A stretch of 62,560 nucleotides of DNA, the filler included, from Basidiobolus meristosporus CBS 931.73 (Eukaryota > Fungi > Basidiobolomycota), in the NCBI GenBank assembly GCA_002104905.1. It is 4 parts of 4 records of this genome, joined end to end, with 100 filler letters (N's around TTAATTAATTAA, not from the genome) between each part and the next. Parts side by side here need not be neighbours in the genome. Positions count along the whole stretch, not along the records: positions 38,992 to 57,873 come from MCFE01001045.1; 3 more parts are not named here. One strand, given 5' to 3'. Below, piece after piece: positions 38,992 through 57,873 of this stretch. The position numbers were made by a program, and so were the translations under genes. Every line of letters starts with the position of its first letter. Positions within the stretch are counted from its first letter, which is position 1. The notes under the pieces are model-generated. The model did not search any database. It was not told the DNA's origin and was given only the letters and a program-made list of their open reading frames with translations.

Positions 38992-39459
38992 TGCCGCAAA
39001 CTGTATTGACACACTGATAAACTAATAGGAGTATACTGCTCAGTATGCAATCAACCTTTCTCAATATTGGGACTTTGGTGGCAACCAGAACGCTCATCAG
39101 CTTCACGAAGAAGTGACCCACTGAATATGCAGTCAATAAGCTGGCATTTCTAGATTTGATAAATGTGTTTGGAGCAGTAAGTTAGACGAGCCCGATGAGA
39201 GATTCTCTTGCGGAGTGAAAAACAGAGCATATGCTGTTAGACGATCCAGAAGCCATTTCCGGTATTGTAAAACCAGTCTGACCATATTGAGGGAATAGCG
39301 CCGGCGCTGCTTCGCAGAATAACCTGGCTACAAAAACCGGTTTAGATTTCCGGTAGAGGGCTCCGAGAAGTACAGCACGAAGTATATAAATGTCTCTTGT
39401 GCTGGTTAGCATTCAGTAGAGGACAGCTTTGATATTTGAGAGATCACTATCAAACAATC

Positions 39460-39639
39460 ATGAAATTCGCCAGCGTACTAGCTATTCTTGCCGCTGTTTC
39501 TGCGACAATTGACTGCTACCCATTGATCCTGGAGACTAGCGATTCAGCAGTGGACAAGAGGGATATGCATGACTTTTGTGGAGGCTGGTTCTGCGGTCAT
39601 ATTAAGCGGGAAAAGTCACCGATGCCAGCAGAACCTTAA
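39460..39639 (+). CDS. Peptide precursor, lineage A (MKF..DCYP), core DMHDFCGGWFCGHI, tail EKSPMPAEP, 59 aa
   Basis: True ATG 24 nt inside the track ORF; signal, KR-core-KR; TATATAAA at 39383. Confidence 0.9.
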   Translation: MKFASVLAILAAVSATIDCYPLILETSDSAVDKRDMHDFCGGWFCGHIKREKSPMPAEP

Positions 39640-40357
39640 CTTCAACTTAAGGAATGTCAAACAGCTAATGTGCACAGACAGCACCAATGGTGATCTGATA
39701 TCCAAACCCGAACTCTGCAATTTTGTTGCTCCTGATAAACACCATGTACGATCAGCCAAGCATACCCATCCACCTTCCGCATGGCATTTTGATTTCCTGA
39801 TGACTTGTTATAAAATAAACAATTCAACTCCACATCATAAATTTCCATATTGTTATGCAAGCAGCGGAATAAAGATTACTTGATTTCGTGCCCATGCCGC
39901 TTTATTGCATGTTGTCGCAGTGCTTCAAACAATCATCTTTTCCAGCAGATTCGAACTGTACGGATATCGTCAGTCATTCTGTTATGGAGAGTGATTTTGT
40001 TGCGAACTTGATATCCACATATGGCCACCGACCTAGACTTCTAATATTCCCAAGAGTACTTCCCTCAGTCCGAAATTCTGATGTCTGTGCTACCAACAGT
40101 TCTGGGATTCAGAATATGAAATGATGACAACTCACATCCTCGCTGTCATACACGAAGCAATTTCGGGATATCACTCCGCACCTCACTTCTCATCCGGTGT
40201 TTTTGTGTAAACAACAATTCTGGGAACCATCACTCAAGGGTTCCAAGAAGCCAGATTTAATGTACATAAATAGCCTCATCAACGGCACTGCGGTTCCTCA
40301 AGCTGTAGCCTTTAGCTGGATATCAATTCCAACATCAATAGAAACCCGACAGTGATA

Positions 40358-40525
40358 ATGAGACTCGTTTCTGTGCTTGCTGTTTACATTGCTGCAACAA
40401 TGACAGCGAATGGCTACCCCGTAAATCATGTGACTGATGATGTTGCCATGGAGAAGCGAGATCTGCATGAATTTTGTGGAGGTTGGTTCTGTGGACATGT
40501 GAAACGGGATGATGACCTCGGGTAA
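40358..40525 (+). CDS. Peptide precursor, lineage B (MRL..NGYP), core DLHEFCGGWFCGHV, tail DDDLG, 55 aa; not in ORF track
   Basis: Hand translation MRLVSVLAVYIAATMTANGYPVNHVTDDVAMEKRDLHEFCGGWFCGHVKRDDDLG*. Confidence 0.9.
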   Translation: MRLVSVLAVYIAATMTANGYPVNHVTDDVAMEKRDLHEFCGGWFCGHVKRDDDLG

Positions 40526-41109
40526 AATGCAGACAAAATCTCGGTCTTGCATATGCCCAATATCTAAAGTGATCAGACCGCGCCTATGGTTACAATCTCA
40601 AGACCCAGAACTCGAAGGAAATCTACCGCCGGAATACACCAATTTTGCAGTATTTTATAATCACCATGGCCGATTAGCTAAACGTATCCTCCCACCTCCG
40701 CATGCAGTTTTATTTGGTGACGAGCTCCTATAAATAAAAAATACAACTCCATAATTCACTATCCGTATTGCTTTAACCTTTAGCAAAGCAACTACTCATA
40801 CTCCAGCTCGTCGCATTTTCACCAAGTTTGCTTGACCCAAAGATGGTAAAGATCCTCCCTACAGGATTTGGACTATACAAATATCATCAGTCATTCCATA
40901 TCCGATATTACTTCTGTTGTGGGGATCCTGTTTACTAACACTCTAATATTCCCAAGAGTGCTTCCCTTGCTTATGAAATACTGAGGTCTGCACAGACAGA
41001 CATTCTAGGAATAAGGATGTAACATGATGATGATTCACACGGTCAATTTAGTTTCAGTATAGTATTTTTGTGCTTGATTTTCATCCAGTACATGTTGTGC
41101 AACCAAAAA

Positions 41110-41169
41110 TTCTGGGAACAAGGAATCACTACCACAGGATTCCAAGAAGCCTAAATCAGCGTACATATA
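41110..41169 (+). promoter_or_regulatory. Lineage B promoter: TTCTGGGAA, TTCCAAGAA, 13 nt, TACATATA
   Basis: 41110-41118, 41140-41148, 41162-41169; same layout upstream of most other B copies. Confidence 0.55.
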
Positions 41170-41256
41170 TAGCTTACTAATAGCGATGCCATTCCAGAGT
41201 CTACAACCTCTCTTCGAATATCATATTCTTCCCGTGCCAATTACTGAGCCAAAACC

Positions 41257-41487
41257 ATGAGACTCGTTACTATACTTACTATTTGTATTGTATCTGCAAT
41301 AACAGCTAACGGCTACCCCATGACTTCGCTGACTGATGAAGTGGCCATGGACAAGAGAGATCTGCACGACTTTTGCGGAGGTTGGTTCTGCGGTCATGTA
41401 AAGCGTGAGCGCAGCATCCTTGATAACCAGGCTACTACCACTCCTCTGGGCTCACATCAGCCCGATATCCTCACGATATCTCAATAA
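41257..41487 (+). CDS. Peptide precursor, lineage B, core DLHDFCGGWFCGHV, 76 aa
   Basis: Signal-YP-pro-KR-core-KR-tail. Confidence 0.92.
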   Translation: MRLVTILTICIVSAITANGYPMTSLTDEVAMDKRDLHDFCGGWFCGHVKRERSILDNQATTTPLGSHQPDILTISQ

Positions 41488-41784
41488 GAGATCACTAAGA
41501 CAATATGACAATTCTACCGAATACTTCCCTGCCTGTTCTTCACGCCCATTTGATTTTGAATCCGTATTTGGGCAAGATCCACCACCAATGTGATTACATA
41601 ATACCCTTAGAGTCCCCAATTTTGTATACATCTTGTAATCAATAAATGGCGCGTTGGTGCACAACTACATTCTCCTTTGATGATTGCCGCAAACTGTATT
41701 GACACACTGATAAACTAATAAGAGTATACTGCTCAGTATGCAATCAACCTTTCTCAATATTGGGACTTTAGTGGCAACCAGGAC

Positions 41785-41893
41785 AGGTTGGTTCTGCGGT
41801 CATGTAAAGCGTGAGCGCAGCATCCTTGATAGCCAGGCTACTACCACTCCTCTGGGCTCACATCAGCCCGATATCCTCACGATATCTCAATAA
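41785..41893 (+). pseudogene. 5'-truncated lineage B copy (GWFCGHVKRERSILDSQ...); may be an assembly join
   Basis: Spacer ...gcaaccaggaca jumps directly into mid-core ggttggttctgc. Confidence 0.6.
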
Positions 41894-42558
41894 GAGACCA
41901 CTAAGACAATATGACACTTCTACCGAATACTTCCCTGCCTGTTCTTCACGCCCATTTGATTTTGAATCCCTATTTGGGCGAGATCTACCACCCATGTGAT
42001 TACATAATACCTTTTGAATCCCCAATTTTGTATGCGTCTCGTAATCAATAAATGGCGCGTTGGTGCACAACTACATTCTCCGTTGATGATTGCCACAAGT
42101 TGTAACGGCATAATGATAGCTTAATAAGAGTATACTGTTCAGCGTGCAATGAACCTTTCTCAATATTGGGACTTTAGTGGCAACCAGGACATTCATCAGC
42201 TTCACGAAGAAGTGACCCATTGAATATGCAGTCAATAAGCTGGCATTTCTAGATTTGATAAATGTGTTTGGAGCAGGAAGTTAGATGAGCCGATGAGAGA
42301 TTCTCTTGCGGAGTGGAAAACAGAGCTTATGCTGTTCGACGATCCAGAAGCCATTTCCGGTATTGTAAAACCAGTCTGACCATATAGAGGGGATAGCGTC
42401 GGCGCTGCTTCCTAGAATAACCTGGCTACAAGAACCGGTTTAGATTTCCGGTAGAGGGCTCCGAGAAGTACAGCACGAAGTATATAAATGTCTCTTGCGC
42501 TGGTTAGCATTCAGTAGAGGGCAGCTTTGATATCTTGAGATATTTCTACAGAACAATC

Positions 42559-42768
42559 ATGAAATTCGCCAGCGTACTTGTAATTCTTGCCGCTGCTTCA
42601 GCAACAATTGACTGCTACCCATTGATCCTGGAGACTAGCGATTCAGCAATGGACAAGAGAGATCTGCATGACTTCTGTGGAGGCTGGTTCTGTGGTCATG
42701 TCAAGCGGGAGGAAGTTCTGGAGACAAGTGAAGTCGAAATACCCACCTCACCTATGCCAAATCTCTAA
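42559..42768 (+). CDS. Peptide precursor, lineage A, core DLHDFCGGWFCGHV, 69 aa
   Basis: ATG 42559; core at 42661-42702. Confidence 0.92.
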   Translation: MKFASVLVILAAASATIDCYPLILETSDSAMDKRDLHDFCGGWFCGHVKREEVLETSEVEIPTSPMPNL

Positions 42769-43168
42769 TGTGCACGGGCAGTATTAATAATGATACGATA
42801 TTTCAACCCGAACTCACCAATTTTGTTGCTTCTGATAAACACTATGAATGATAAGCTAAGCGTAGCTTTCCATCCCCCGCATGGAATTTTGATTTTCTGA
42901 TGGCTTTCTATGAAATAAACAATATAATCCCACGTTCCCAAGTTTCATATTGCTATTCAACCAGCAGAGTAAAGACCGCTCATATGTAATCCTATGCAAT
43001 TTAGTTTCATGTTGACGAGGTGTCGCTAGTGAAGCTCCAACCAATCAGAATTGAACTCAAAGTATATCTTCCTGATATGAATAGTAATTTTGCTGTGAAC
43101 TTGATATCGACATATGGTCACCGACCAAGATTCCAAATATTCCCAAGAGTACTTCCCTCACTTGTGAA

Positions 43169-43225
43169 GCTACCAACCCTCCTCTGAGCTCACATCAGCC
43201 CGACACCCCCACAATAGCTCAACAA
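43169..43225 (+). pseudogene. Tail-only relic of a lineage B gene
   Basis: gctaccaaccctcctctgagctcacatcagcccgac... matches the B-gene 3' end; TAA changed to CAA; promoter, signal and core missing. Confidence 0.75.
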
Positions 43226-43744
43226 GGTACCACTAAGTCAGGGTTTCAACGCTGCCAAGTACGCCCCCGTCCATTCTTCACGACCATTTGATTTTGAATC
43301 CGTAATTTGGGCGAGATCCACCACCAATGTGATTACATAATAACCTTTGAATCCCCAATTTTGTATGTGTCTCGTAATCAATAAATGGCGCGTTGGTGCA
43401 CAACTACATTCTCCATTGATGATTGCCACAAGTTGTAACGGCATACTGATAGCTTAATAAGAGCATACTGTTCAGCATGCAATCAATCTTTCTCAATATT
43501 GGGACTTTAGTGGCAACCAGGACATTCATCAGCTTCACGAAGAAGTGACCCACTGAATATGCAGTCAATAAGCTGGCATTTCTAGATTTGATAAATGTGT
43601 TTGGAGCAGTAAGTTAGATGAGCCCGATGAGAGATTCTCATGCGGAGTGGAAAACAGAGCATATATGCTGTTCGACGATCGAGAAGCCATTTCCGGTATT
43701 GTAAAACCAGTCTGACCATATTGAGGGAATAGTGTCAGCGCTGC

Positions 43745-43823
43745 TTCCTAGAATAACCTGGCTACAAAACCGGTTTGGATTTCCGGTAGAGGATTCCGAG
43801 AAGTACAGCACGAAGTATATAAA
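43745..43823 (+). promoter_or_regulatory. Lineage A promoter: TTCCTAGAA, TTCCGAGAA, 13 nt, TATATAAA
   Basis: 43745-43753, 43794-43802, 43816-43823. Confidence 0.55.
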
Positions 43824-43892
43824 TGTCCCTTGCGCTGATCAGCATTCAGTAGAGGACAGCTTTGATATTTGAGAGATTACTACCAAACAATC

Positions 43893-44102
43893 ATGAAATT
43901 CGCCAGCGTACTTGCTATTCTTGCCGCTGTTTCAGTGACAATTGACTGCTACCCATTGATCCTGGAGACTAGCGATTCAGCAGTGGACAAGAGAGATCTG
44001 CATGACTTCTGCGGAGGCTGGTTCTGTGGTCATGTTAAACGGGAGGAAGCTCTCGAAGCCAATGGAGCCATAACTTCAGCCTCAGGAATGCCAAATGCCT
44101 GA
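43893..44102 (+). CDS. Peptide precursor, lineage A, core DLHDFCGGWFCGHV, 69 aa
   Basis: Signal-YP-pro-KR-core-KR-tail. Confidence 0.92.
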   Translation: MKFASVLAILAAVSVTIDCYPLILETSDSAVDKRDLHDFCGGWFCGHVKREEALEANGAITSASGMPNA

Positions 44103-44790
44103 TTAGCATAGACTACACTAATGACGAGCTGATATCCAAGCCCAAATTCAGGTTCAAGTAATCCTACCACCCAAACTCGCCAATTTTGTTGCTACTGATG
44201 CACGATCAGCTAAGCGTAACCATTCAGCCTCTGCATGGATTTTTGATTTCCTGATAATATACTACAAAATAAACAATATATCCCCACATTCCAAATATCC
44301 GTTTTGTTGCTTAACCAGTAGGGTAAAAACCCCTCGTTTGCGAGTCCTTGCCATTTTGTTCCATTCCGACATGATGTCCTAAATGAACATCTATTCGGGC
44401 ATGTTCAAACTCCACCAACATCCTCCTGTAAATTCTGTTGCAAGCTTGATATCTACATATCGGCACTGATCAAGGCCTCCAATATCCACAGGAGTTCTCC
44501 GCTCACTTGGCAAATTCTGAGGTCTGTGCTGCCGAGAATTTCAGGAATCGGAATATGATGTGAAGATAATTCACAATCTCAATCCAATAAACAAGACTGT
44601 TTCAGGACATCATTTCAGTTTACTTTCCATCCGTTGTATCTTGTGCGACCAACAATTCTGGGAATCAGTAATTGCCACTCTGGGATTCCTAGAACTCCCA
44701 AGAAATGTACATAAATCGCTCCCCAACGAACCATCATTTCTCAGGCTACAGCCTTGCTATCGAATACCAAACTCTTCCCCAACCGGAATA

Positions 44791-45021
44791 ATGAGACTCC
44801 TTTCTGTACTCGCTGTTTGCATCATTTCTGCAATGACAGCTAACGGCTATCCTGTGGGTCAGCTAGCCAATGATGTAACCAAGGAGAAGAGAGATCTGCA
44901 TGACTTTTGTGGAGGTTGGTTCTGTGGCCATGTGAAGCGTGATCTCTCTGTCCATGACAGCCAGACTACTACATCTTCTCTGAGCTCACAGCAGCCTAAA
45001 ACCTTCATGACCGCTCTATAA
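44791..45021 (+). CDS. Peptide precursor, lineage B, core DLHDFCGGWFCGHV, 76 aa
   Basis: ATG 44791 (MRLLSVLAVC); the longer track ORF is upstream read-through from a non-ATG start. Confidence 0.9.
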   Translation: MRLLSVLAVCIISAMTANGYPVGQLANDVTKEKRDLHDFCGGWFCGHVKRDLSVHDSQTTTSSLSSQQPKTFMTAL

Positions 45022-45687
45022 GGTACCACCAAGTCAAGATGTTAATTGTCCCGAATTCGTCTCCGCCCGTTCTTCAAGCCCATTTGATTTTGAATCCGTA
45101 ATTTGGGCAAGATCTACCACTAATGTGATTACATAATACCCTTTGAATCCCCAATTTTGTACGCGTCTCGTAATCAATAAATGGCGCGTTGGTGCACAAC
45201 TGCATTCTCCATTGATGATTGCCACAAGTTGTAATGGCATACTGATAGCTTAATTAGAGCATACTTCTCAGCATGTAATAAACCTTTCTCATTATTATGA
45301 TATTAGTGGTAACCAGATCATTCATTAGCCTCATGTAGAAGTGACCCATTGAATATGCAGTTAATAAGCTGGCATATCTAGATTTGATAAATGTGTTTGG
45401 AGCAGGAAATTAGATGAGCCCGATGAGAGGTTCTAATGCGGAGTGAAAAATAGAGCATATGCTGTTCAACGATCCAGAAGCCAATTCCGGTTTTCTAAAA
45501 CCAGTCTGACCATATTGAGGGGATAGTGTCAGCGTTGCTTCCTAGAATAACCTGGCTACAAAAACCGGTTTGGATTTCCAGTAGTGGGTTCCGAGAAGTG
45601 CAGCACGGAGAATATAAATGTCCCTTGCGCTGATCAGCATTCAGTAGAGGACAGCTTTGATATTTGAGAGATCACTACCAAACAATC

Positions 45688-45897
45688 ATGAAATTCGCCA
45701 GCGTACTTGCTATTCTTGCCGCTGTTTCAGTGACAATTGACTGCTACCCATTGATCCTGGACACTAGCAATTCAGCAGTGGACAAGAGAGATCTGCATGA
45801 CTTCTGCGGAGGCTGGTTCTGTGGTCATGTCAAGCGAGAGCAAGTTCTGGAGACAAGTGAAGCCAATATCTCCGCTCCATCGATGTTAGTTGCCTGA
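45688..45897 (+). CDS. Peptide precursor, lineage A, core DLHDFCGGWFCGHV, 69 aa
   Basis: Signal-YP-pro-KR-core-KR-tail. Confidence 0.92.
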   Translation: MKFASVLAILAAVSVTIDCYPLILDTSNSAVDKRDLHDFCGGWFCGHVKREQVLETSEANISAPSMLVA

Positions 45898-46597
45898 TGT
45901 GCACAGGCAGCACTGATGACAAGCCGATATCCAAATCCGAACTATCCAATTTTGTTGCTCCTGATAAATACCACACACGACAAATTAAGCGTATCCATCC
46001 AACATCCTCCACATGGATTTTTGATTATCTGATAATTTCTCAAGAAATAAACATTGTCACCCTGCATTTCATATTTTCTCACGGCTACTAGACTAGCAGA
46101 GTGGAGGCCACTTGTATTCAGACCCATTCCCATATATTCCATATTGGAATGAGCTGATTTCAACTCTACGAGGCACCTTTATTCCGCAATACAATGGCAA
46201 TTTCGCGGTGAAAAGAATATTCACATATGGTCGCCGTCCAAGATCCGTTCAATGCACACCTCACAAAACCTCTTCAAAGTTACAGGTATGTCATAGGTAC
46301 CATCATTGAATATTATGCATATGTCTGGGGTATTAAGCCGAATGAACTCTTGAGAAGCCAATATACGAAAAATAATAAATATATCATACGACGATCAAGA
46401 ATTCATTTCCAGTTTCCAAAATCAATCTAACCTTAATGGGGGATTGGTGGCCGCTTTGCTTCCTAGAATATCCCCGCTACAACAACTGGTATGAGTTTCA
46501 GGAGTGAAATGGATGGGAAGTATAAGAGGAACTCGTGCCGATTTGAGCTTAGTAGAAGACAGCCTTTGATATCTTGGTAGTTCATTAAAAAAGAATC

Positions 46598-46798
46598 ATG
46601 AAATCCACCAACACACTTATTGTTATTGTCGCAGCTTCAGTAGCCATTGACTGCTACCCATCGATTGTGAAGACTATCAACTCAACTTTGAACAAGAGAG
46701 ATCTACATGACCTCTATGACCATGTCAAGCGGGAGAGACTTCTGGAGACAAGTGAAGAAATTACATCCACCTCACAAGGCTATATTTTGTACTATTAG
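46598..46798 (+). CDS. Diverged lineage A precursor with Cys-free 9-aa core DLHDLYDHV, 66 aa
   Basis: Open frame, 19+15 aa leader geometry and both KR sites kept; core shortened by 15 nt. Confidence 0.75.
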   Translation: MKSTNTLIVIVAASVAIDCYPSIVKTINSTLNKRDLHDLYDHVKRERLLETSEEITSTSQGYILYY

Positions 46799-47513
46799 CC
46801 TACTCGACTGTCGCACTAACACATTACTGACTACCCTCATGCCTGCTTTCAACTGTTGAATTAACATATTCTTGACCGCTCGTCACGCCTGATTAATTTT
46901 TGAATCCGCAATTTCAGCGAGAATATCACCAATATTTGAATATTCAATTTTGTTGACATATTGTAGTCAATAAACAGGGTACTAGGGCGTAGTGATACCC
47001 TCTGTTGATGGAACAACTTGTTAGTATGTGTGCATGGTTGAATGTCAGCATTTGATTCAGTATGCCACAAATCCTTACATAAATTGCTTTGTCTCCAACA
47101 TGTCCAATGCGCATGAATCATACCAGGGGCCATACCATAGTGCGCACGTTTCACCAGCGTATATAACTCTTCAGATTTACTATTATATAGTATATATCAT
47201 TACTGAAGTTAATAAATATGTTTGGAGCAATTAACTATGGGAAATCTCTGAGGTTATTTTGCCCACTGGATCATAATGAGTATGCTGTTTGCCGATCAGG
47301 AAGCTATTTCCGGTTTTTCGATACCGGTGTGACTATACCGAGTGCTTGGCGTCCGCTTTGTTTCCTAGAATATCGCTGCTGCAATAACTAGTTTAGATAT
47401 CCCCTGGGAAAGTACCAATATGTGTTGTAAGAAGAGTATAAATAGAACTCTTGCGGATCCATATTCAGTAGTACACGGCGTTTGATATCTTGAGAGATCA
47501 TTATACTCTACCA

Positions 47514-47681
47514 ATGAAGTTCACCAGCATGCTTGTCGCGATTTCTGCCTCTTCAGTAGCTGTTGACTGCTACCCATTGACCCTGGAGACTAGCGAGTCC
47601 ACAGTGAACAAGAGAGATCTGCATGACTTTTGTGGAGGCTGATTCTGTGGACATGTTAAACGGGATGATGACCTCAGGTAA
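47514..47681 (+). pseudogene. Chimeric copy (A-type leader, DDDL-type tail) with Trp codon changed to TGA
   Basis: MKFTSMLVAISASSVAVDCYPLTLETSESTVNKRDLHDFCGG*FCGHVKRDDDLR*; TGA at 47640-47642. Confidence 0.85.
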
Positions 47682-48413
47682 AATGCAGACAAAATCTCGG
47701 TCTTGCATATGCCCAATATCTAAAGTGATCAGACCGCGCCTATGAGTACAATCTCAAGACCCAGAACTCGAAGGAAATCTACCGCCGGAATACACCAATT
47801 TTACTGTATTTTATAATCACCATGGCCGATTAGCTAAACGTATCCTCCCACCTCCGCATGCAGTTTTATTTGGTGACGAGCTCCTATAAAATAAACAATA
47901 CAACTCCATAATCCACTATCCGTATTGCTTTAACCTTTAGCAAAGCAACTACTCATACTCAAGCTCGTCGCATTTTCACCAAGTTTGCTTGACCCAAAGA
48001 TGGTAAAGATCCTCCCTACAGGATTTGGACTATACAAATATCATCAGTCATTCCATATCCGATATTACTTCTGTTGTGGAGATCCTGTTTACTAACACTC
48101 TGATATTCCCAAGAGTGCTTCCCTTGCTTATGAAATACTGAGGTCTGCACAGACAGACATTCTAGGAATAAGGATGTAACATGATGATGATTCACACGGT
48201 CAATTTAGTTTCAGTATAGTATTTTTGTGCTTGATTTTCATCCAGTACATGTTGTGCAACCAAAAATTCTGGGAACAAGGAATCACTACCACAGGATTCC
48301 AAGAAGCCTAAATCAGCGTACATATATAGCTTACTAATAGCGATGCCATTCCACAGTCTACAACCTCTCTTCGAATATCATATTCTTCCCCTGCCAATTA
48401 TTGAGCCAAAACC

Positions 48414-48644
48414 ATGAGACTCGTTACTATACTTACTATTTGTATTGTATCTGCAATAACAGCTAACGGCTACCCCATGACTTCGCTGACTGATGAAGTG
48501 GCCATCGACAAGAGAGATCTGCACGACTTTTGCGGAGGTTGGTTCTGCGGTCATGTAAAGCGTGAGCGCAGCATCCTTGATAGCCAGGCTACTACCACTC
48601 CTCTGGGCTTACATCAGCCCGATATCCTCACGATAGCTCAATAA
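48414..48644 (+). CDS. Peptide precursor, lineage B, core DLHDFCGGWFCGHV, 76 aa
   Basis: Signal-YP-pro-KR-core-KR-tail. Confidence 0.92.
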   Translation: MRLVTILTICIVSAITANGYPMTSLTDEVAIDKRDLHDFCGGWFCGHVKRERSILDSQATTTPLGLHQPDILTIAQ

Positions 48645-49310
48645 GAGGCCACTAAGACAATATGACACTTCTACCGAATACTTCCCTGCCTGTTCTTCAC
48701 GCCCATTTGATTTTGAATCCCTATTTGGGCAAAATCTACCACCCACGTGATTACATAATACCCTTAGAGTCCCCAATTTTGTATACATCTTGTAATCAAT
48801 AAATGGCGCGTTGGTGCACAACTACATTCTCCTTTGATGATTGCCACAAGTTGTAACGGCATACTGATAGCTTAATAAGAGTATACTGTTCAGCATGCAA
48901 TCAATCTTTCTCAATATTGGGACTTTAGTGGCAACCAGGACATTCATCAGCTTCACGAAGAATTGACCCATTGAATATGCAGTCAATAAGCTGGCATATC
49001 TAGATTTGATAAATGTGTTTGGAGCAGGAAGTTAGACGAGCCCGATGAGAGATTCTCTTGCGGAGTGGAAAACAGAGCTTATGCTGTTCGACGATCCAGA
49101 AGCCATTTCCGGTATTGTAAAACCAGTCTGACCATATAGAGGGGATAGCGTCGGCGCTGCTTCCTAGAATAACCTGGCTACAAGAACCGGCTTAGATTTC
49201 CGGTAGAGGGCTCCGAGAAGTACAGCACGAAGTATATAAATGTCTCTTGCGCTGGTTAGCATTCAGTAGAGGGCAGCTTTGATATCTTGAGATATTTCTA
49301 CAGAACAATC

Positions 49311-49520
49311 ATGAAATTCGCCAGCGTACTTGTAATTCTTGCCGCTGCTTCAGCAACAATTGACTGCTACCCATTGATCCTGGAGACTAGCGATTCAGCA
49401 ATGGACAAGAGAGATCTGCATGACTTCTGTGGAGGCTGGTTCTGTGGTCATGTCAAGCGGGAGGAAGTTCTGGAGACAAGTGAAGTCGAAATACCCACCT
49501 CACCTATGCCAAATCTCTAA
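49311..49520 (+). CDS. Peptide precursor, lineage A, core DLHDFCGGWFCGHV, 69 aa
   Basis: Same protein as 42559 and 56908. Confidence 0.92.
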   Translation: MKFASVLVILAAASATIDCYPLILETSDSAMDKRDLHDFCGGWFCGHVKREEVLETSEVEIPTSPMPNL

Positions 49521-49920
49521 TGTGCACGGGCAGTATTAATAATGATACGATATTTCAACCCGAACTCACCAATTTTGTTGCTTCTGATAAACACTATGAA
49601 TGATAAGCTAAGCGTAGCTTTCCATCCCCCGCATGGAATTTTGATTTTCTGATGGCTTTCTATGATATAAACAATATAATCCCACGTTCTAAATATTCAT
49701 ATTGCTATTCAACCAGCAGAGTAAAGACCGCTCATATGTAATCCTATGCAATTTAGTTTCATGTTGACGAGGTGTCGCTAGTGAAGCTCCAACCAATCAG
49801 AATTGAACTCAAAGTATATCTTCCTGATATGAATAGTAATTTTGCTGTGAACTTGATATCGACATATGGTCACCGACCAAGATTCCAAATATTCCCAAGA
49901 GTACTTCCCTCACTTGTGAA

Positions 49921-49977
49921 GCTACCAACCCTCCTCTGAGCTCACATCAGCCCGACACCCCCACAATAGCTCAACAA
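49921..49977 (+). pseudogene. Tail-only relic of a lineage B gene
   Basis: Matches 43169-43225. Confidence 0.75.
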
Positions 49978-50644
49978 GGTACCACTAAGTCAGGGTTTCA
50001 ACGCTGCCAAGTACGCCCCCGTCCATTCTTCACGACCATTTGATTTTGAATCCGTAATTTGGGCGAGATCCACCACCAATGTGATTACATAATACCCTTT
50101 GAATCCCCAATTTTGTATGTGTCTCGTAATCAATAAATGGCGCGTTGGTGCACAACTACATTCTCCTTTGATGATTGCCACAAGTTGTAACGGCATACTG
50201 ATAGCTTAATAAGAGTATACTGTTCAGCATGCAATCAATCTTTCTCAATATTGGGACTTTAGTGGCAACCAGGACATTCATCAGCTTCACGAAGAAGTGA
50301 CCCACTGAATATGCAGTCAATAAGCTGGCATTTCTAGATTTGATAAATGTGTTTGGAGCAGTAAGTTAGATGAGCCCGATGAGAGATTCTCATGCGGAGT
50401 GGAAAACAGAGCATATATGCTGTTCGACGATCGAGAAGCCATTTCCGGTATTGTAAAACCAGTCTGACCATATTGAGGGAATAGTGTCAGCGCTGCTTCC
50501 TAGAATAACCTGGCTACAAAACCGGTTTGGATTTCCGGTAGAGGATTCCGAGAAGTGCGGCACGAAGTATATAAATGTCCCTTGCGCTGATCAGCATTCA
50601 GTAGAGGAAAGCTTTGATATTTGCGAGATCACTATCAAACAATC

Positions 50645-50854
50645 ATGAAATTCGCCAGCGTACTTGCTATTCTTGCCGCTGTTTCTGCGACAGTTGATTG
50701 CTACCCATTGATCCTGGAGACTAGCGATTCAGCAATGGACAAGAGAGATCTGCATGACTTCTGCGGAGGCTGGTTCTGTGGTCATGTCAAGCGTGAGGAA
50801 GCTCCGGAGACAACTGAAGCCAATATCTCCACCCCATCGATGTTAGTTGCCTGA
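50645..50854 (+). CDS. Peptide precursor, lineage A, core DLHDFCGGWFCGHV, 69 aa
   Basis: Signal-YP-pro-KR-core-KR-tail. Confidence 0.92.
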   Translation: MKFASVLAILAAVSATVDCYPLILETSDSAMDKRDLHDFCGGWFCGHVKREEAPETTEANISTPSMLVA

Positions 50855-51534
50855 TGAGAACAGGCAGCACTGATGACAAGCCGACATCCATATCCGAACT
50901 ATCCAATTTTGTTGCTCCTGATAAATACCACACACGACAAACTAAGCGTATCCATCCATCCATCCTCCACATGCGTTTTTGATAATCTGACAATTTCCAG
51001 AGAAATAAACATTGCTACCCTGCATTTCATATTTTCTCACGGCTATTAAACTAGCGGAGTGGAAGTCACTTGTATTCGGACCCATTCCCGTATATTCCAT
51101 GCTGAGATGAGCTGATTTCAACTCTACCAGGCACCTTTATTCCGTAATACAATGGCAATTTCGCGGTGAAAGGAATATTCACATATGGTTGCCGACCCAG
51201 CTTTCCTCTATTCCCCAGAAGACTTCCCCTACTCTTGAAAGGCTGACATCTGCGCAGTCAAACATTCTAGGAATCAGAACATGACTTGAGGATGATGACC
51301 ACCTTTGATGTAACACGCAATGTGATTTTAGTATATCACCATCCCATAGCTTTTCAACGATCAGTTGCATCTTGTGGCACCAATAGTTCTGAGAATCGGA
51401 AATCACCAGCCTGGGATTCCAAGAAGCCAGAATCAATGCACATAAATAGCTCACTAACGACACTGCCATTCATCAGCCTGCAACCTTTCTGTTGAGTATC
51501 AGATTCTACTTCAGCCAGCAATCGAACCTAAACC

Positions 51535-51765
51535 ATGAGACTCTTTGCTGTACTCACTACTTGTATCGTTGCCACAATGACAGCTAATGGCTACCCCGTA
51601 AATCAGGTGACTGATGGAGTAGCCATGGAAAAGAGAGATCTGCACGACTTTTGTGGAGGCTGGTTCTGCGGCCATGTGAAGCGTGATCACACAGTCCATG
51701 ACAGTCAGACTACTACATCTTCTCTGAGCTCACATCAGCCTAACACCTTCATGACAGCTCAATAA
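51535..51765 (+). CDS. Peptide precursor, lineage B, core DLHDFCGGWFCGHV, 76 aa
   Basis: Signal-YP-pro-KR-core-KR-tail. Confidence 0.92.
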   Translation: MRLFAVLTTCIVATMTANGYPVNQVTDGVAMEKRDLHDFCGGWFCGHVKRDHTVHDSQTTTSSLSSHQPNTFMTAQ

Positions 51766-52431
51766 GGTACCACCTAGTCAAGATGTTAATTCTCCCAAAT
51801 GTGTTTCTGCCCGTTCTTCAAGCCCATTTGATTTTGAATCCGTAATTTGGGCAAGATCCACCACCAATGTGATTACATAATACCCTTTGAATCCCCAATT
51901 TTGTATGCGTCTCGTAATCAATAAATGGCGCATTGGTGCACAACTACATTCTCCTTTGATGATTGCCGCAAACTGTATTGACACACTGATAAACTAATAG
52001 GAGTATACTGCTCAGTATGCAATCAACCTTTCTCAATATTGGGACTTTGGTGGCAACCAGAACGCTCATCAGCTTCACGAAGAAGTGACCCACTGAATAT
52101 GCAGTCAATAAGCTGGCATTTCTAGATTTGATAAATGTGTTTGGAGCAGTAAGTTAGACGAGCCCGATGAGAGATTCTCTTGCGGAGTGAAAAACAGAGC
52201 ATATGCTGTTAGACGATCCAGAAGCCATTTCCGGTATTGTAAAACCAGTCTGACCATATTGAGGGAATAGCGCCGGCGCTGCTTCGCAGAATAACCTGGC
52301 TACAAAAACCGGTTTAGATTTCCGGTAGAGGGCTCCGAGAAGTACAGCACGAAGTATATAAATGTCTCTTGTGCTGGTTAGCATTCAGTAGAGGACAGCT
52401 TTGATATTTGAGAGATCACTATCAAACAATC

Positions 52432-52611
52432 ATGAAATTCGCCAGCGTACTTGTAATTCTTGCCGCTGTTTCTGCGACAATTGACTGCTACCCATTGATC
52501 CTGGAGACTAGCGATTCAGCAGTGGACAAGAGGGATATGCATGACTTTTGTGGAGGCTGGTTCTGCGGTCATATTAAGCGGGAAAAGTCACCGATGCCAG
52601 CAGAACCTTAA
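52432..52611 (+). CDS. Peptide precursor, lineage A, core DMHDFCGGWFCGHI, 59 aa
   Basis: Paralog of 39460, offset 12972. Confidence 0.9.
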   Translation: MKFASVLVILAAVSATIDCYPLILETSDSAVDKRDMHDFCGGWFCGHIKREKSPMPAEP

Positions 52612-53329
52612 CTTCAACTTAAGGAATGTCAAACAGCTAATGTGCACAGACAGCACCAATGGTGATCTGATATCCAAACCTGAACTCTGCAATTTTGTTG
52701 CTCCTGATAAACACCATGTACGATCAGCCAAGCATACCCATCCACCTTCCGCATGGCATTTTGATTTCCTGATGACTTGTTATAAAATAAACAATTCAAC
52801 TCCACATCATAAATTTCCATATTGTTATGCAAGCAGCGGAATGAAGATTACTTGATTTCGTGCCCATACCGCTTTATTGCATGTTGTCGCAGTGCTTCAA
52901 ACAATCATCTTTTCCAGCAGATTCGAACTGTACGGATATCGTCAGTCATTCTGTTATGGAGAGTGATTTTGTTGCGAACTTGATATCCACATATGGCCAC
53001 CGACCTAGACTTCTAATATTCCCAAGAGTACTTCCCTCAGTCCGAAATTCTGATGTCTGTGCTACCAACAGTTCTGGGATTCAGAATATGAAATGATGAC
53101 AACTCACACCCTCGCTGTCATACACGAAGCAATTTCGGGATATCACTCCGCACCTCACTTCTCATCCGGTGTTTTTGTGTAAACAACAATTCTGGGAACC
53201 ATCACTCAAGGGTTCCAAGAAGCCAGATTTAATGTACATAAATAGCCTCATCAACGGCACTGCGGTTCCTCAAGCTGTAGCCTTTAGCTGGATAACAATT
53301 CCAACATCAATAGAAACCCGACAGTGATA

Positions 53330-53497
53330 ATGAGACTCGTTTCTGTGCTTGCTGTTTACATTGCTGCCACAATGACAGCGAATGGCTACCCCGTAAGTCT
53401 TGTGACTGATGGAGTAACGATGGAAAAGAGAGATCTGCATGACTTTTGTGGAGGTTGGTTCTGTGGACATGTGAAACGGGATGATGACCTCGGGTAA
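53330..53497 (+). CDS. Peptide precursor, lineage B, core DLHDFCGGWFCGHV, tail DDDLG, 55 aa; not in ORF track
   Basis: Hand translation MRLVSVLAVYIAATMTANGYPVSLVTDGVTMEKRDLHDFCGGWFCGHVKRDDDLG*. Confidence 0.9.
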   Translation: MRLVSVLAVYIAATMTANGYPVSLVTDGVTMEKRDLHDFCGGWFCGHVKRDDDLG

Positions 53498-54229
53498 AAT
53501 GCAGACAAAATCTCGGTCTTGCATATGCCCAATATCTAAAGTGATCAGACCGCGCCTATGAGTACAATCTCAAGACCCAGAACTCGAAGGAAATCTACCG
53601 CCGGAATACACCAATTTTGCAGTATTTTATAATCACCATGGCCGATTAGCTAAACGTATCCTCCCACCTCTGCATGCAGTTTTATTTGGTGACGAGCTCC
53701 TATAAAATAAACAATACAACTCCATAATCCACTATCCGTATTGCTTTAACCTTTAGCAAAGCAACTACTCATACTCAAGCTCGTCGCATTTTCACCAAGT
53801 TTGCTTGACCCAAAGATGGTAAAGATCCTCCCTACAGGATTTGGACTATACAAATATCATCAATCATTCCATATCCGATATAACTTCTGTTGTGGGGATC
53901 CTGTTTACTAACACTCTAATATTCCCAAGAGTGCTTCCCTTGCTTATGAAATACTGAGGTCTGCCCAGACAGACATTCTAGGAATAAGGATGTAACATGA
54001 TGATGATTCACACGGTCAATTTAGTTTCAGTATAGTATTTTTGTGCTTGATTTTCATCCAGTACATGTTGTGCAACCAAAAATTCTGGGAACAAGGAATC
54101 ACTACCACAGGATTCCAAGAAGCCTAAATCAGCGTACATATATAGCTTACTAATAGCGATGCCATTCCACAGTCTACAACCTCTCTTCGAATATCATATT
54201 CTTCCCCTGCCAATTATTGAGCCAAAACC

Positions 54230-54460
54230 ATGAGACTCGTTACTATACTTACTATTTGTATTGTATCTGCAATAACAGCTAACGGCTACCCCATGACTTC
54301 GCTGACTGATGAAGTGGCCATCGACAAGAGAGATCTGCACGACTTTTGCGGAGGTTGGTTCTGCGGTCATGTAAAGCGTGAGCGCAGCATCCTTGATAGC
54401 CAGGCTACTACCACTCCTCTGGGCTTATATCAGCCCGATATCCTCACGATAGCTCAATAA
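54230..54460 (+). CDS. Peptide precursor, lineage B, core DLHDFCGGWFCGHV, 76 aa
   Basis: Signal-YP-pro-KR-core-KR-tail. Confidence 0.92.
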   Translation: MRLVTILTICIVSAITANGYPMTSLTDEVAIDKRDLHDFCGGWFCGHVKRERSILDSQATTTPLGLYQPDILTIAQ

Positions 54461-55124
54461 GAGGCCACTAAGACAATACGACACTTCTACCGAATACTTC
54501 CCTGCCTGTTCTTCACGTCCATTTGATTTTGAATCCGTATTTGGGCAAGATCCACCACCCATGTGATTACATAATACCCTTTGAATCCCCAATTTTGTAT
54601 ACATCTTGTAATCAATAAATGGCGCGTTGGTGCACAACTACATTCTCCATTGATGATTGCCGCAAACTGTATTGACACACTGATAAACTAATAGGAGTAT
54701 ACTGCTCAGTATGCAATCAACCTTTCTCAATATTGGGACTTTAGTGGCAACCAGGACATTCATCAGCTTCACGAAGAAGTGACCCACTGAATATGCAGTC
54801 AATAAGCTGGCATTTCTAGATTTGATAAATGTGTTTGGAGCAGGAAGTTAGATGAGCCGATGAGAGATTCTCATGCGGAGTGGAAAACAGAGCTTATGAT
54901 GTTCGACGATCCAGAAGCCATTTCCGGTATTGTAAAACCAGTCTGACCATATTGAGGGGATAGCGTCGGCGCTGCTTCGCAGAATAACCTGGCTACAAAA
55001 ACCGGTTTAGATTTCCGGTAGAGGATTCTGAGAAGTGCGGCACGAAGTATATCAATGTCTCTTGCGCTGATTAGCATTCAGTAAAATACAGCTTTGATAT
55101 TTGAGAGATCACTACCAAACAATC

Positions 55125-55334
55125 ATGAAATTCGCCAGCGTACTTGCTATTCTTGCCGCTGTTTCTGCGAGAGTTGATTGCTACCCATTGATACTGGAGA
55201 CTAGCGATTCAGCAATGGACAAGAGAGATCTGCATGACTTCTGCGGAGGCTGGTTCTGTGGTCATGTCAAGCGTGAGGAAGCTCTGGAGACAAGTGAAGC
55301 CAATATCTCCACTCCATTGATGTTAGTTGCCTGA
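55125..55334 (+). CDS. Peptide precursor, lineage A, core DLHDFCGGWFCGHV, 69 aa
   Basis: Signal-YP-pro-KR-core-KR-tail. Confidence 0.92.
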   Translation: MKFASVLAILAAVSARVDCYPLILETSDSAMDKRDLHDFCGGWFCGHVKREEALETSEANISTPLMLVA

Positions 55335-56010
55335 TGAGAACAGGCAGCACTGATGACAAGCCGACATCCATATCCGAACTATCCAATTTTGTTGCTCCTG
55401 ATAAATACCACACACGACAAACTAAGCGTATCCATCCATCCATCCTCCACATGCGTTTTTGATAATCTGACAATTTCCAGAGAAATAAACATTGCTACCC
55501 TGCATTTCATATTTTCTCACGGCTATTAAACTAGCGGAGTGGAAGTCACTGGTATTCGGACCCATTCCCATATATTCCATATTGGAATGAGCTGATTTCA
55601 ACTCTACCAGGCACCTTTATTCAGTAATACAATGGCAATTTCGCGCTGAAAGGAATATTCACATATGGTTGCCGACCCAGCTTTTCTCCATTCCCCAGAA
55701 GGCTTCCCCTACTCATGAAAGGCTGCCATCTGCGCAGCCAAACATTCTAGGAATCAGGACATGACTTGAGGATGATGACCATCTTTGATGTAACACGCAA
55801 GGTAATTTTAGTATATCATCATCCTATAGCTTTTCAACGATCAGTTGCATTTTGTGGCACCAATAGTTCTGAGAATCGGAAATCGCCAGCCTGAGATTCC
55901 AAGAAGCCAGAATCAATGCACATAAATAGCTCACTAACGACACTGCCATTCATCAGCCTGCAGCCTTTCTGTTAAGTAACAAATTCTACTTGAGCATTTG
56001 AACCTAAGCC

Positions 56011-56241
56011 ATGAGACTCATTGCTGTACTCACTACTTGTATCGTTGCCACAATGACAGCTAATGGCTACCCCGTAATTCAGGTGACTGATGGAGTAGTC
56101 ATGGAAAAGAGAGATCTGCACGACTTTTGTGGAGGCTGGTTCTGTGGCCATGTGAAGCGTGATCACACAGTCCATGACAGTCAGACTACTACATCTTCTC
56201 TGAGCTCACAGCAGCCTAAAACCTTCATGACCGCTCTATAA
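56011..56241 (+). CDS. Peptide precursor, lineage B, core DLHDFCGGWFCGHV, 76 aa
   Basis: Signal-YP-pro-KR-core-KR-tail. Confidence 0.92.
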   Translation: MRLIAVLTTCIVATMTANGYPVIQVTDGVVMEKRDLHDFCGGWFCGHVKRDHTVHDSQTTTSSLSSQQPKTFMTAL

Positions 56242-56907
56242 GGTACCACCAAGTCAAGATATTAATTCTCCCAAATGTGTCTCCGCCCGTTCTTCAAGCC
56301 CATTTGATTTTGAATCCGTAATTTGGGCAAGATCCACCACCAATGTGATTACATAATACCCTTTGAATCCCCAATTTTGTATGCGTCTCGTAATCAATAA
56401 ATGGCGCATTGGTGCACAACTACATTTTCCTTTGATGATTGCCGCAAACTGTATTGACACACTGATAAACTAATAAGAGCATACTGTTTAGTATGCAATC
56501 AACCTTTCTCAATATTGGGACTTTAGTGGCAACCAGGACATTCATCAGCTTCACGAAGAAGTGGCCCATTGAATATGCAGTCAATAAGCTGGCATTTCTA
56601 GATTTGATAAATGTGTTTGGAGCAGGAAGTTAGATGAGCCGATGAGAGATTCTCATGCGGAGTGGAAAACAGAGCTTATGCTGTTCGACGATCCAGAAGC
56701 CAATTCCGGTATTGTAAAACCAGTCTGACCATATAGAGGGGATAGCGTCGGCGCTGCTTCCTAGAATAACCTGGCTACAAGAACCGGCTTAGATTTCCGG
56801 TAGAGGGCTCCGAGAAGTACAGCACGAAGTATATAAATGTCTCTTGCGCTGGTTAGCATTCAGTAGAGGGCAGCTTTGATATCTTGAGATATTTCTACAG
56901 AACAATC

Positions 56908-57117
56908 ATGAAATTCGCCAGCGTACTTGTAATTCTTGCCGCTGCTTCAGCAACAATTGACTGCTACCCATTGATCCTGGAGACTAGCGATTCAGCAATG
57001 GACAAGAGAGATCTGCATGACTTCTGTGGAGGCTGGTTCTGTGGTCATGTCAAGCGGGAGGAAGTTCTGGAGACAAGTGAAGTCGAAATACCCACCTCAC
57101 CTATGCCAAATCTCTAA
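56908..57117 (+). CDS. Peptide precursor, lineage A, core DLHDFCGGWFCGHV, 69 aa
   Basis: Same protein as 42559 and 49311. Confidence 0.92.
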   Translation: MKFASVLVILAAASATIDCYPLILETSDSAMDKRDLHDFCGGWFCGHVKREEVLETSEVEIPTSPMPNL

Positions 57118-57517
57118 TGTGCACGGGCAGTATTAATAATGATACGATATTTCAACCCGAACTCACCAATTTTGTTGCTTCTGATAAACACTATGCATGA
57201 TAAGCTAAGCGTAGCTTTCCATCCCCCGCATGGAATTTTGATTTTCTGATGGCTTTCTATGAAATAAACAATATAATCCCACGTTCCCAAGTTTCATATT
57301 GCTATTCAACCAGCAGAGTAAAGACCGCTCATATGTAATCCTATGCAATTTAGTTTCATGTTGACGAGGTGTCGCTAGTGAAGCTCCAACCAATCAGAAT
57401 TGAACTCAAAGTATATCTTCCTGATATGAATAGTAATTTTGCTGTGAACTTGATATCGACATATGGTCACCGACCAAGATTCCAAATATTCCCAAGAGTA
57501 CTTCCCTCACTTGTGAA

Positions 57518-57574
57518 GCTACCAACCCTCCTCTGAGCTCACATCAGCCCGACACCCCCGCAATAGCTCAACAA
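57518..57574 (+). pseudogene. Tail-only relic of a lineage B gene
   Basis: Matches 43169-43225. Confidence 0.75.
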
Positions 57575-57873
57575 GGTACCACTAAGTCAGGGTTTCAACG
57601 CTGCCAAGTACGCCCCCGTCCATTCTTCACGACCATTTGATTTTGAATCCGTAATTTGAGCGAGATCCACCACCAATGTGATTACATAATACCCTTTGAA
57701 TCCCCAATTTTGTATGCGTCTCGTAATCAATAAATGGCGCATTGGTGCACAACTACATTCTCCATTGATGATTGCCACAAGTTGTAACGGCATACTGGTA
57801 GCTTAATAAGAGTATACTGTTCAGTATGCAATCAATCTTTCTCAATATTGGGACTTTAGTGGCAACCAGGACA

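Follow-up and report, generated by a model that had tools for sequence, protein, structure and literature searches.

The window analysed here is a stretch of 62,560 nucleotides from the fungus Basidiobolus meristosporus CBS 931.73 (assembly GCA_002104905.1), in which four parts of four records are joined by filler. Its segment 38992-57873, on the + strand, is the scaffold MCFE01001045.1, which is occupied along its whole length by a tandem array of small genes. These are likely to be independent intronless genes for secreted-peptide precursors, each with one 14-residue core between two Lys-Arg (KR) pairs, and the family was found only in the genus Basidiobolus.

The array on MCFE01001045.1

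The segment is a complete scaffold of 18,882 bp, which consists wholly of repeat, contains no N and has an even GC content of 0.39-0.45. An open reading frame (ORF) listing and a six-frame motif scan of the whole scaffold identified 19 precursor-like ORFs, all of them on the + strand, of which 17 are intact and two are broken. The units are arranged head-to-tail with a spacing of 886-916 bp, which is extended to 1302-1334 bp at three places; tRNA and Rfam scans of the scaffold were both empty. The sequence-only reading of this stretch had described a tandem array of single-core Kex2-type precursors, and the six-frame scan confirmed this observation and reproduced its core counts exactly: among the intact ORFs, the core reads DLHDFCGGWFCGHV in 14, DMHDFCGGWFCGHI in two (39460 and 52432) and DLHEFCGGWFCGHV in one (40358). 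It had overlooked the two broken copies, a 406-bp duplication, a division into two subfamilies and the nature of the scaffold ends, which it took for gaps, whereas they are the ends of the complete 18,882-bp scaffold. Its number of 17 copies as a minimum held, since the assembly contains 50 intact cores.

All 17 intact copies have the intronless layout given in the sequence-only reading: 19 hydrophobic residues are followed by a 15-residue segment (YP...KR), the 14-residue core, a second KR and a variable tail, and the residue after each KR is acidic in all copies (D, or E/D). The genes fall into two diverged subfamilies, which mostly alternate along the scaffold. Type A genes start with MKFA and encode 59-69 amino acids, type B genes start with MRL and encode 55-76 amino acids; the two types are 41-55% identical overall, and both have 19 + 15 + 14 residues before the second KR. 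The first 19 residues form a predicted signal peptide: K or R stands at position 2, the mean grand average of hydropathicity (GRAVY) of residues 3-17 is 2.3, no more than one residue is charged, and positions -3/-1 are taken by small or aliphatic residues (AG, IC or VC). AlphaFold models an N-terminal helix (residues 3-18) only and leaves the rest unstructured, as expected of a pro-peptide, with a mean predicted local distance difference test (pLDDT) score of 53. A sequence-profile search of the PDB returned nothing even at E = 10, and a protein-language-model atlas pointed no more than weakly to further precursors of small secreted peptides, with scores up to 0.82.

Reading from the left end, the array begins with a type A gene of 59 amino acids with the core DMHDFCGGWFCGHI (39460..39639), a type B gene of 55 amino acids with the core DLHEFCGGWFCGHV (40358..40525) and a type B gene of 76 amino acids with the standard core DLHDFCGGWFCGHV (41257..41487). 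A 406-bp tandem duplication occupies 41379..42191; its two copies match at 92%, and the second holds just the 3' part of a gene (WFCGHV-KR-tail), with neither promoter nor start. The remaining intact genes carry the standard core unless stated otherwise. Type A genes of 69 amino acids are located at 42559..42768, 43893..44102, 45688..45897, 49311..49520, 50645..50854, 55125..55334 and 56908..57117, and type B genes of 76 amino acids at 44791..45021, 48414..48644, 51535..51765, 54230..54460 and 56011..56241. A second type A gene of 59 amino acids with the core DMHDFCGGWFCGHI (52432..52611) lies inside a 2.8-kb segment that duplicates 38992-41785 at 98.3% identity, and a type B gene of 55 amino acids, this time with the standard core, is found at 53330..53497. 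Two copies between these genes have decayed: the unit at 46598..46798 is still an open ORF, in which an internal core deletion (DLHDLYDHV) has removed five core residues including both cysteines, and the unit at 47514..47642 is broken by a frameshift inside the core after DLHDFCGG. A copy matching the degenerate 46598 unit is present on the other array scaffold described below. Segmental duplicates within the scaffold measure 2.4-3.1 kb and are 90-98% identical, and the units differ from each other at 2-25% of their DNA positions.

Selection on the 14-residue core

Selection was analysed with 36 intact copies in a codon alignment without gaps, in which type A was compared with type B by the method of Nei and Gojobori. 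The ratio of non-synonymous to synonymous divergence (dN/dS) of the core is 0.009 at a dS of 1.35, and dN is 0 for both KR pairs. The block of KR, core and KR reaches 0.008 versus 1.5 for the signal peptide, which has retained its hydrophobicity but not its sequence, and the pro-region lies at 0.3. Within each of the two types, the dN/dS of the core amounts to 0.02-0.05. More than one codon is used at nine of the 14 core positions, with synonymous variants at eight of these, only nine of 504 residues depart from the core consensus, and KR flanks the core on both sides in 36/36 copies with zero non-synonymous change. Because the core codons carry many synonymous differences and almost no amino-acid changes, the array genes are far beyond chance, and the single-core precursor genes proposed from the sequence are genuine and selected. 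The selected product is the KR-flanked 14-mer, not the remainder of the precursor. Few short sequences are under stronger constraint than the 14-mer, with its dN/dS of about 0.01 at saturated synonymous sites, but no function is known for it.

The same segment stands out at the DNA level. When 38 units were aligned from -520 to +400 relative to the ATG, pairwise nucleotide identity peaked at +80 to +139, which is the KR-core segment, with values of 0.81-0.89 versus a background of about 0.6. An antisense ORF of 54 codons in the spacers served as negative control; it is located on the - strand at 42071-42235, 43404-43568, 48822-48986, 50156-50320, 51944-52108, 54638-54802 and 56420-56584. These ORFs have a TTG start, no ATG and a ratio of non-synonymous to synonymous differences (pN/pS) of 0.79, and were rejected as genes on the basis of this ratio and the TTG start; they are passengers of conserved spacer DNA.

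Relatives in Basidiobolus ranarum

The sequence-only reading had recognized no homolog, which did not hold: a search with the longer fused gene model described below found five proteins of B. ranarum, and these are clear homologs with two cores each, so that the family is of the kind of the Kex2-processed repeat proteins (KEPs). On B. ranarum contigs, the genes again form tandem arrays with a spacing of about 1 kb and contiguous ORFs of 116-152 amino acids, which consist of signal peptide, pro-region, KR-core-KR, spacer, KR-core-(K/R)KR and tail. The core reads DLHDLCGRWFCGHT in 25 of 30 B. ranarum cores, and the two species show fixed differences at core positions 5 (F/L), 8 (G/R) and 14 (V/T). 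D1, H3, C6, C11 and H13 are kept in 79-80 of the 80 cores of both species. In blastn comparisons between the species, only KR-core-KR segments of 50-70 nt align, at 77-87% identity; this segment is thus the sole DNA that can still be aligned between B. meristosporus and B. ranarum. In a FastTree phylogeny of 56 distinct sequences, which covers 150 nucleotides from the start of the coding region, is rooted at the midpoint and omits duplicate rows as well as copies that differ in length, the two species form two separate groups, which suggests expansion within each lineage, although the alignment is short and the tree is to be taken as indicative. When 1.84 billion representative proteins were searched exhaustively with a profile, no convincing member turned up outside Basidiobolus. 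Two non-Basidiobolus profile matches, the repetitive protein P0012 of 603 amino acids and P0014, a metagenomic protein with CGxxxxxxCG-KR repeats, were treated as motif-level noise.

Two further forms of the core were seen in B. ranarum. P0008 (L003 6119-6577) and P0009 have a truncated third core right before the stop codon (...DRFCGGWFC or ...DRFCEGWFC), which lacks both the preceding KR and the GHT. A distant three-core paralog (P0013) with cores like FWNMRYYCGGWVCAHT shares only CGGWxCxH with the array family and has no His at position 3; its gene (L005 6001-6630, JASJQH010007427.1) is single and lies between the genes for a ribonucleotide reductase and a fatty-acid desaturase.

Proposed processing and possible function

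In fungal secretory processing, it is established that Kex2 cleaves after KR and that Kex1 trims basic residues. By this route, each gene would be transcribed from its own TATA-type promoter, and the product of 55-76 amino acids would enter the endoplasmic reticulum through its 19-residue signal peptide, of which signal peptidase would take off about 19 residues. In the late Golgi, a kexin of the Kex2 type would cleave after KR34, at the end of the acidic pro-region, and after KR50, past the core, and a Kex1-type carboxypeptidase would strip the trailing K and R. The 14-mer DLHDFCGGWFCGHV would then be secreted, with a six-residue ring that is most likely closed by a disulfide between Cys6 and Cys11, and its output would be raised by the multiplication of whole genes, of which two scaffolds carry at least 50 intact copies, and not of cores within one ORF. 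The 14-mer has a pI of about 5, a charge of about -2 and a computed average mass of about 1592.8 Da in the reduced form (about 2 Da less when oxidised); for the B. ranarum core DLHDLCGRWFCGHT, the mass is about 1659.9 Da. It is anionic and therefore unlike cationic membrane-active antimicrobial peptides.

Several points weigh against this account, in which transcription, cleavage, the disulfide and the role of the peptide are inferred. The signal peptide was called by a hydrophobicity heuristic alone, and Kex2 and Kex1 are presumably present in Basidiobolus, an assumption taken from general fungal biology. In database models, neighbouring A and B units are joined by an in-frame GT..AG intron, which would lead to spliced products with two cores. 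Finally, the two array scaffolds may be separate loci or rearranged haplotypes, and the copy number per haploid genome is uncertain.

The ring CGGWFC is common to the distant paralog and to the truncated third core of P0008/P0009. Since it is kept even there, the ring together with the following His is probably the functional heart of the peptide. The 14-mer, anionic and with many His, Cys, Asp and aromatic residues, is probably required in bulk, for example to bind metals outside the cell or to act as a signal or a competition factor, although other functions may apply. Among the 14 residues of the core, six could serve as metal ligands, and none of these occupies one of the three species-variable positions. 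A more specific proposal, which we consider rather unlikely, is that the 14-mer is a secreted metal-binding peptide with an N-terminal X-X-His site for Cu or Ni, a Cys-X4-Cys pair and a second His, whose gene has been amplified at least 50-fold for bulk output. If true, the array would be an extracellular counterpart of the yeast CUP1 array and could help to capture or detoxify metals where Basidiobolus lives, in amphibian guts and in dung. We know of no Kex2-released peptide metallophore in fungi.

Alternatively, the peptide could be the backbone of a RiPP, a peptide made on ribosomes and modified after translation, which after release by Kex2 is tailored by enzymes encoded elsewhere, for instance through Trp-Cys or other cross-links or through oxidation, as in the dikaritins. 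The architecture fits KEP-type RiPP precursors (PMC7329392), the aromatic and Cys-rich residues are invariant, and the right flank of the larger array on the second scaffold lies beyond the data read; however, the two cysteines in CX4C spacing are more simply explained by a disulfide, and no tailoring-type domain is encoded in the flanks that were read, which comprise one side of the larger array and a B. ranarum flank and are incomplete. On its left side, the B. meristosporus array has no neighbour other than the gene for a muHD-domain endocytic adaptor, and the B. ranarum array is adjoined by genes for a cytochrome b5 reductase, a GSKIP-domain protein, an Oxa1-type protein (60KD_IMP) and a saccharopine dehydrogenase as well as by an unnamed ORF without Pfam match. 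No DUF3328 (UstYa) or other tailoring gene is found in the left flank of the larger array or in 9 kb beside a B. ranarum array, with unlinked genes not searched. The sequence-only reading had also noted that the window lacks a tailoring enzyme, which is true of the window but says little, as the whole scaffold is array. Tailoring of this kind is quite improbable in our view.

The region that corresponds to the flank of the B. ranarum array is found in B. meristosporus on MCFE01000852.1 (L006 1-10000), where an extra PPR-repeat gene is inserted. No array lies within 10 kb of this counterpart, and the 10 kb upstream are free of called genes; either the array locus is not positionally conserved at MCFE01000852.1, or the assembly is broken there.

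Comparison with known systems

The closest parallel is provided by the fungal KEPs (Le Marquer 2019; Umemura 2020, PMC7329392), with which the array genes share the signal peptide, the acidic pro-region, the short KR-flanked cores and the lack of an enzymatic domain. The B. ranarum homologs, with two cores per ORF, have the classical KEP layout. In B. meristosporus, by contrast, there is one core per ORF and the repeat unit is the whole gene, in at least 50 copies, so that several cores per protein, the feature that defines KEPs, are found in the family but not in the genes of the window. In function and in evolution, the family is to be placed with the KEPs. Among 1461 strains, B. meristosporus is reported to have more KEPs than any other fungus, namely 43 (Umemura 2020, PMC7329392). 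The sole Basidiobolus KEP type described in that study is S-3, which is rich in Y and D and is a different peptide from the 14-mer. No occurrence of the core string was found in the searched literature or in the searched supplements of PMC7329392, and literature searches on Basidiobolus with Kex2, RiPP or pheromone and on amino-terminal Cu/Ni-binding (ATCUN) motifs with Kex2 gave nothing specific. What is new here is a peptide family of a single genus that is amplified in an unusual way and shows an exceptionally clean signature of selection. Surveys for Kex2-released peptides screen single proteins for internal repeats and thus miss repetition at the gene level, except through fused models. 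The 14-mer is short and easy to synthesize, and its role is therefore directly testable. Basidiobolus is associated with the gut of amphibians and reptiles and occasionally causes disease in humans, and, to our knowledge, neither signals nor effectors of peptide nature are on record for the Zoopagomycota or the Basidiobolus lineage.

The precursor of the yeast alpha-factor (MFalpha1) and the alpha-type pheromones of ascomycetes resemble the array genes in the secretory route, in a KR cleavage site followed by acidic residues, although cleavage is only predicted for the array, in the small aromatic-rich peptide and in dosage by repetition. An MF_alpha cluster was also among the look-alikes of the protein-language model, with a low score of 0.73. 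However, the array genes have no match to the Pfam families MF_alpha and MF_alpha_N even at E up to 10, they lack the X-Ala spacer dipeptides removed by Ste13 and they carry one core per gene. We know of no pheromone role in zygomycete-grade fungi.

The MSDIN genes of Amanita and Galerina, which encode the precursors of amatoxins and phallotoxins, form a large multigene family with one core per small gene between conserved flanks, and in this respect they offer a working analogy, though no more than that. MSDIN precursors have no signal peptide, prolyl oligopeptidase B cleaves and cyclises them at Pro residues, and their cores are hypervariable, whereas the Basidiobolus core is nearly invariant, a signal peptide is present and there is no sequence similarity. 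In the CUP1 locus of Saccharomyces cerevisiae, tandem amplification of the whole gene lifts the dosage of a tiny Cys-rich product, which is intracellular and unprocessed and is encoded by near-identical recent amplicons. Dosage by amplification of whole tandem units and the potential metal ligands in the core are what the Basidiobolus array has in common with it; the Basidiobolus units, however, have diverged to dS >1 and are unrelated in sequence.

The ATCUN site for Cu and Ni is a free NH2-X-X-His, as in albumin (DAH), hepcidin (DTH) and histatin-5 (DSH). After the predicted KR cleavage, the 14-mer would begin with D-L-H, and a His at core position 3, just after the KR site, is found in 79 of 80 cores. 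With the CX4C-ring hormones oxytocin/vasopressin and urotensin II, it would share a six-residue disulfide ring bearing Trp-Phe and a short tail. Homology to any of these peptides is lacking, the urotensin pharmacophore W-K-Y is missing, and both metal binding and the ring are predictions.

Transcription units and fused gene models

Each unit carries its own set of motifs on the + strand only, which corroborates the view of the sequence-only reading that whole transcription units are repeated. The upstream motif GGxYTCCxAGAA lies at -102 to -121 from the ATG in 15 units and is common to types A and B. It is followed at -77 to -95 by the TATA-like motif TAYATAWAT, which is exact in 13 units and present with one-base variants in the others, likewise in both types; an example of such a promoter region is found at 50543..50576. 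A downstream motif, CCAATTTTG, occurs in 19 copies, 15 of which lie 49-130 nt past a stop codon (for example, 50903..50911), and is a candidate 3'-end element. In the longer spacers of 1.30-1.33 kb, a second CCAATTTTG is located 535-587 nt past the stop codon (42022, 43355, 50107, 57704). These second elements and the 406-bp duplication at 41379-42191 suggest remnants of partly deleted units.

The deposited gene models join neighbouring units via long introns or span internal duplications, and for about 50 genes the current annotation holds only a handful of models, which are partly fused. Such models comprise P0001 (119 amino acids), P0002 (107 amino acids) and two more of 130 and 191 amino acids, and fused or duplication-spanning models are located at 50645-51765 of the window, at L001 3320-5312 and 10001-10324, and at L007 13587-17363. 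In P0001, the A gene at 50645 forms the first half and is joined to the B gene at 51535, the second half, by an in-frame GT..AG, whereby the signal peptide of the B gene is skipped. The fusion also explains a domain label: P0001 scores 27.1 bits for zf-RING_13 (PF17977, RING/U-box-like zinc-binding) through two summed partial matches of a Cys/His pattern, versus 15.8 bits for a single unit at a cut-off of 25, and the label was rejected as an artefact of the fused model; Pfam yielded no other match.

If the fusions were real, the products would be multi-core precursors spliced from adjacent A and B units, that is, an ordinary KEP family in which the single-core genes are illusory. The in-frame junction of P0001, the database models that link adjacent units and the true two-core ORFs of B. 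ranarum would fit such a scheme. The B. ranarum ORFs, however, are contiguous and unspliced, and in B. meristosporus the supposed intron would throw away a conserved open signal peptide. Moreover, every B unit has kept its ATG, its hydrophobic signal sequence and its YP...KR pro-region across a dS of 0.3-0.6 within type B, and the upstream motif and TATA box stand before every unit. Because every B unit keeps its own start, signal sequence and promoter motifs despite this long divergence, the A/B fusions are regarded as prediction artefacts, and spliced multi-core products are very unlikely.

Second array and assembly support

A second array is located on MCFE01000116.1 (164 kb). It starts about 2.2 kb downstream of the gene for the endocytic adaptor mentioned above and extends from about 88.5 kb to past 122 kb, that is, over more than 33 kb; it was read only to 122 kb, where it is still running, so that its right edge lies beyond the data and its 33 further intact cores are a minimum. 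The B. meristosporus assembly thus contains at least 50 intact cores on two scaffolds, 42 of which are identical. The two array scaffolds match in mosaic, non-colinear blocks of 90-96% identity.

In Logan unitigs of the short-read runs X1 and X2, which derive from the same sample, the sequence is recovered along with its variants; some match at >=99% and others at 95-99%, and their fragmentation and high depth are what a diverged multi-copy array would give. That the ORFs are passengers of a satellite-like non-coding repeat, a dead gene array or a product of mis-assembled long reads is extremely improbable, because, although the scaffold is all repeat, two copies are broken and the array is known here from DNA alone, the core combines a dN/dS of 0.009 with saturating dS, conservation across species is confined to the core, 17 of 19 ORFs are intact, the units diverge by 2-25% and short-read unitigs back the sequence. 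In run X4 (2013, with a different organism label), only short contigs over the core segment 51631-51686 were found, at 95-99% identity, which hints at conservation of the core in a third isolate or species.

The copies at the left edge of the second array (L007 4242-9291, about 88.5-93.6 kb of MCFE01000116.1) are the most divergent ones and occupy basal branches of the A and B groups in the tree. They include the core variants DLHDLCGGSFCGHV and DLDDFCGGWFCGHV and one copy with a core deletion, and this fits older copies that have escaped turnover at the margin of the array.

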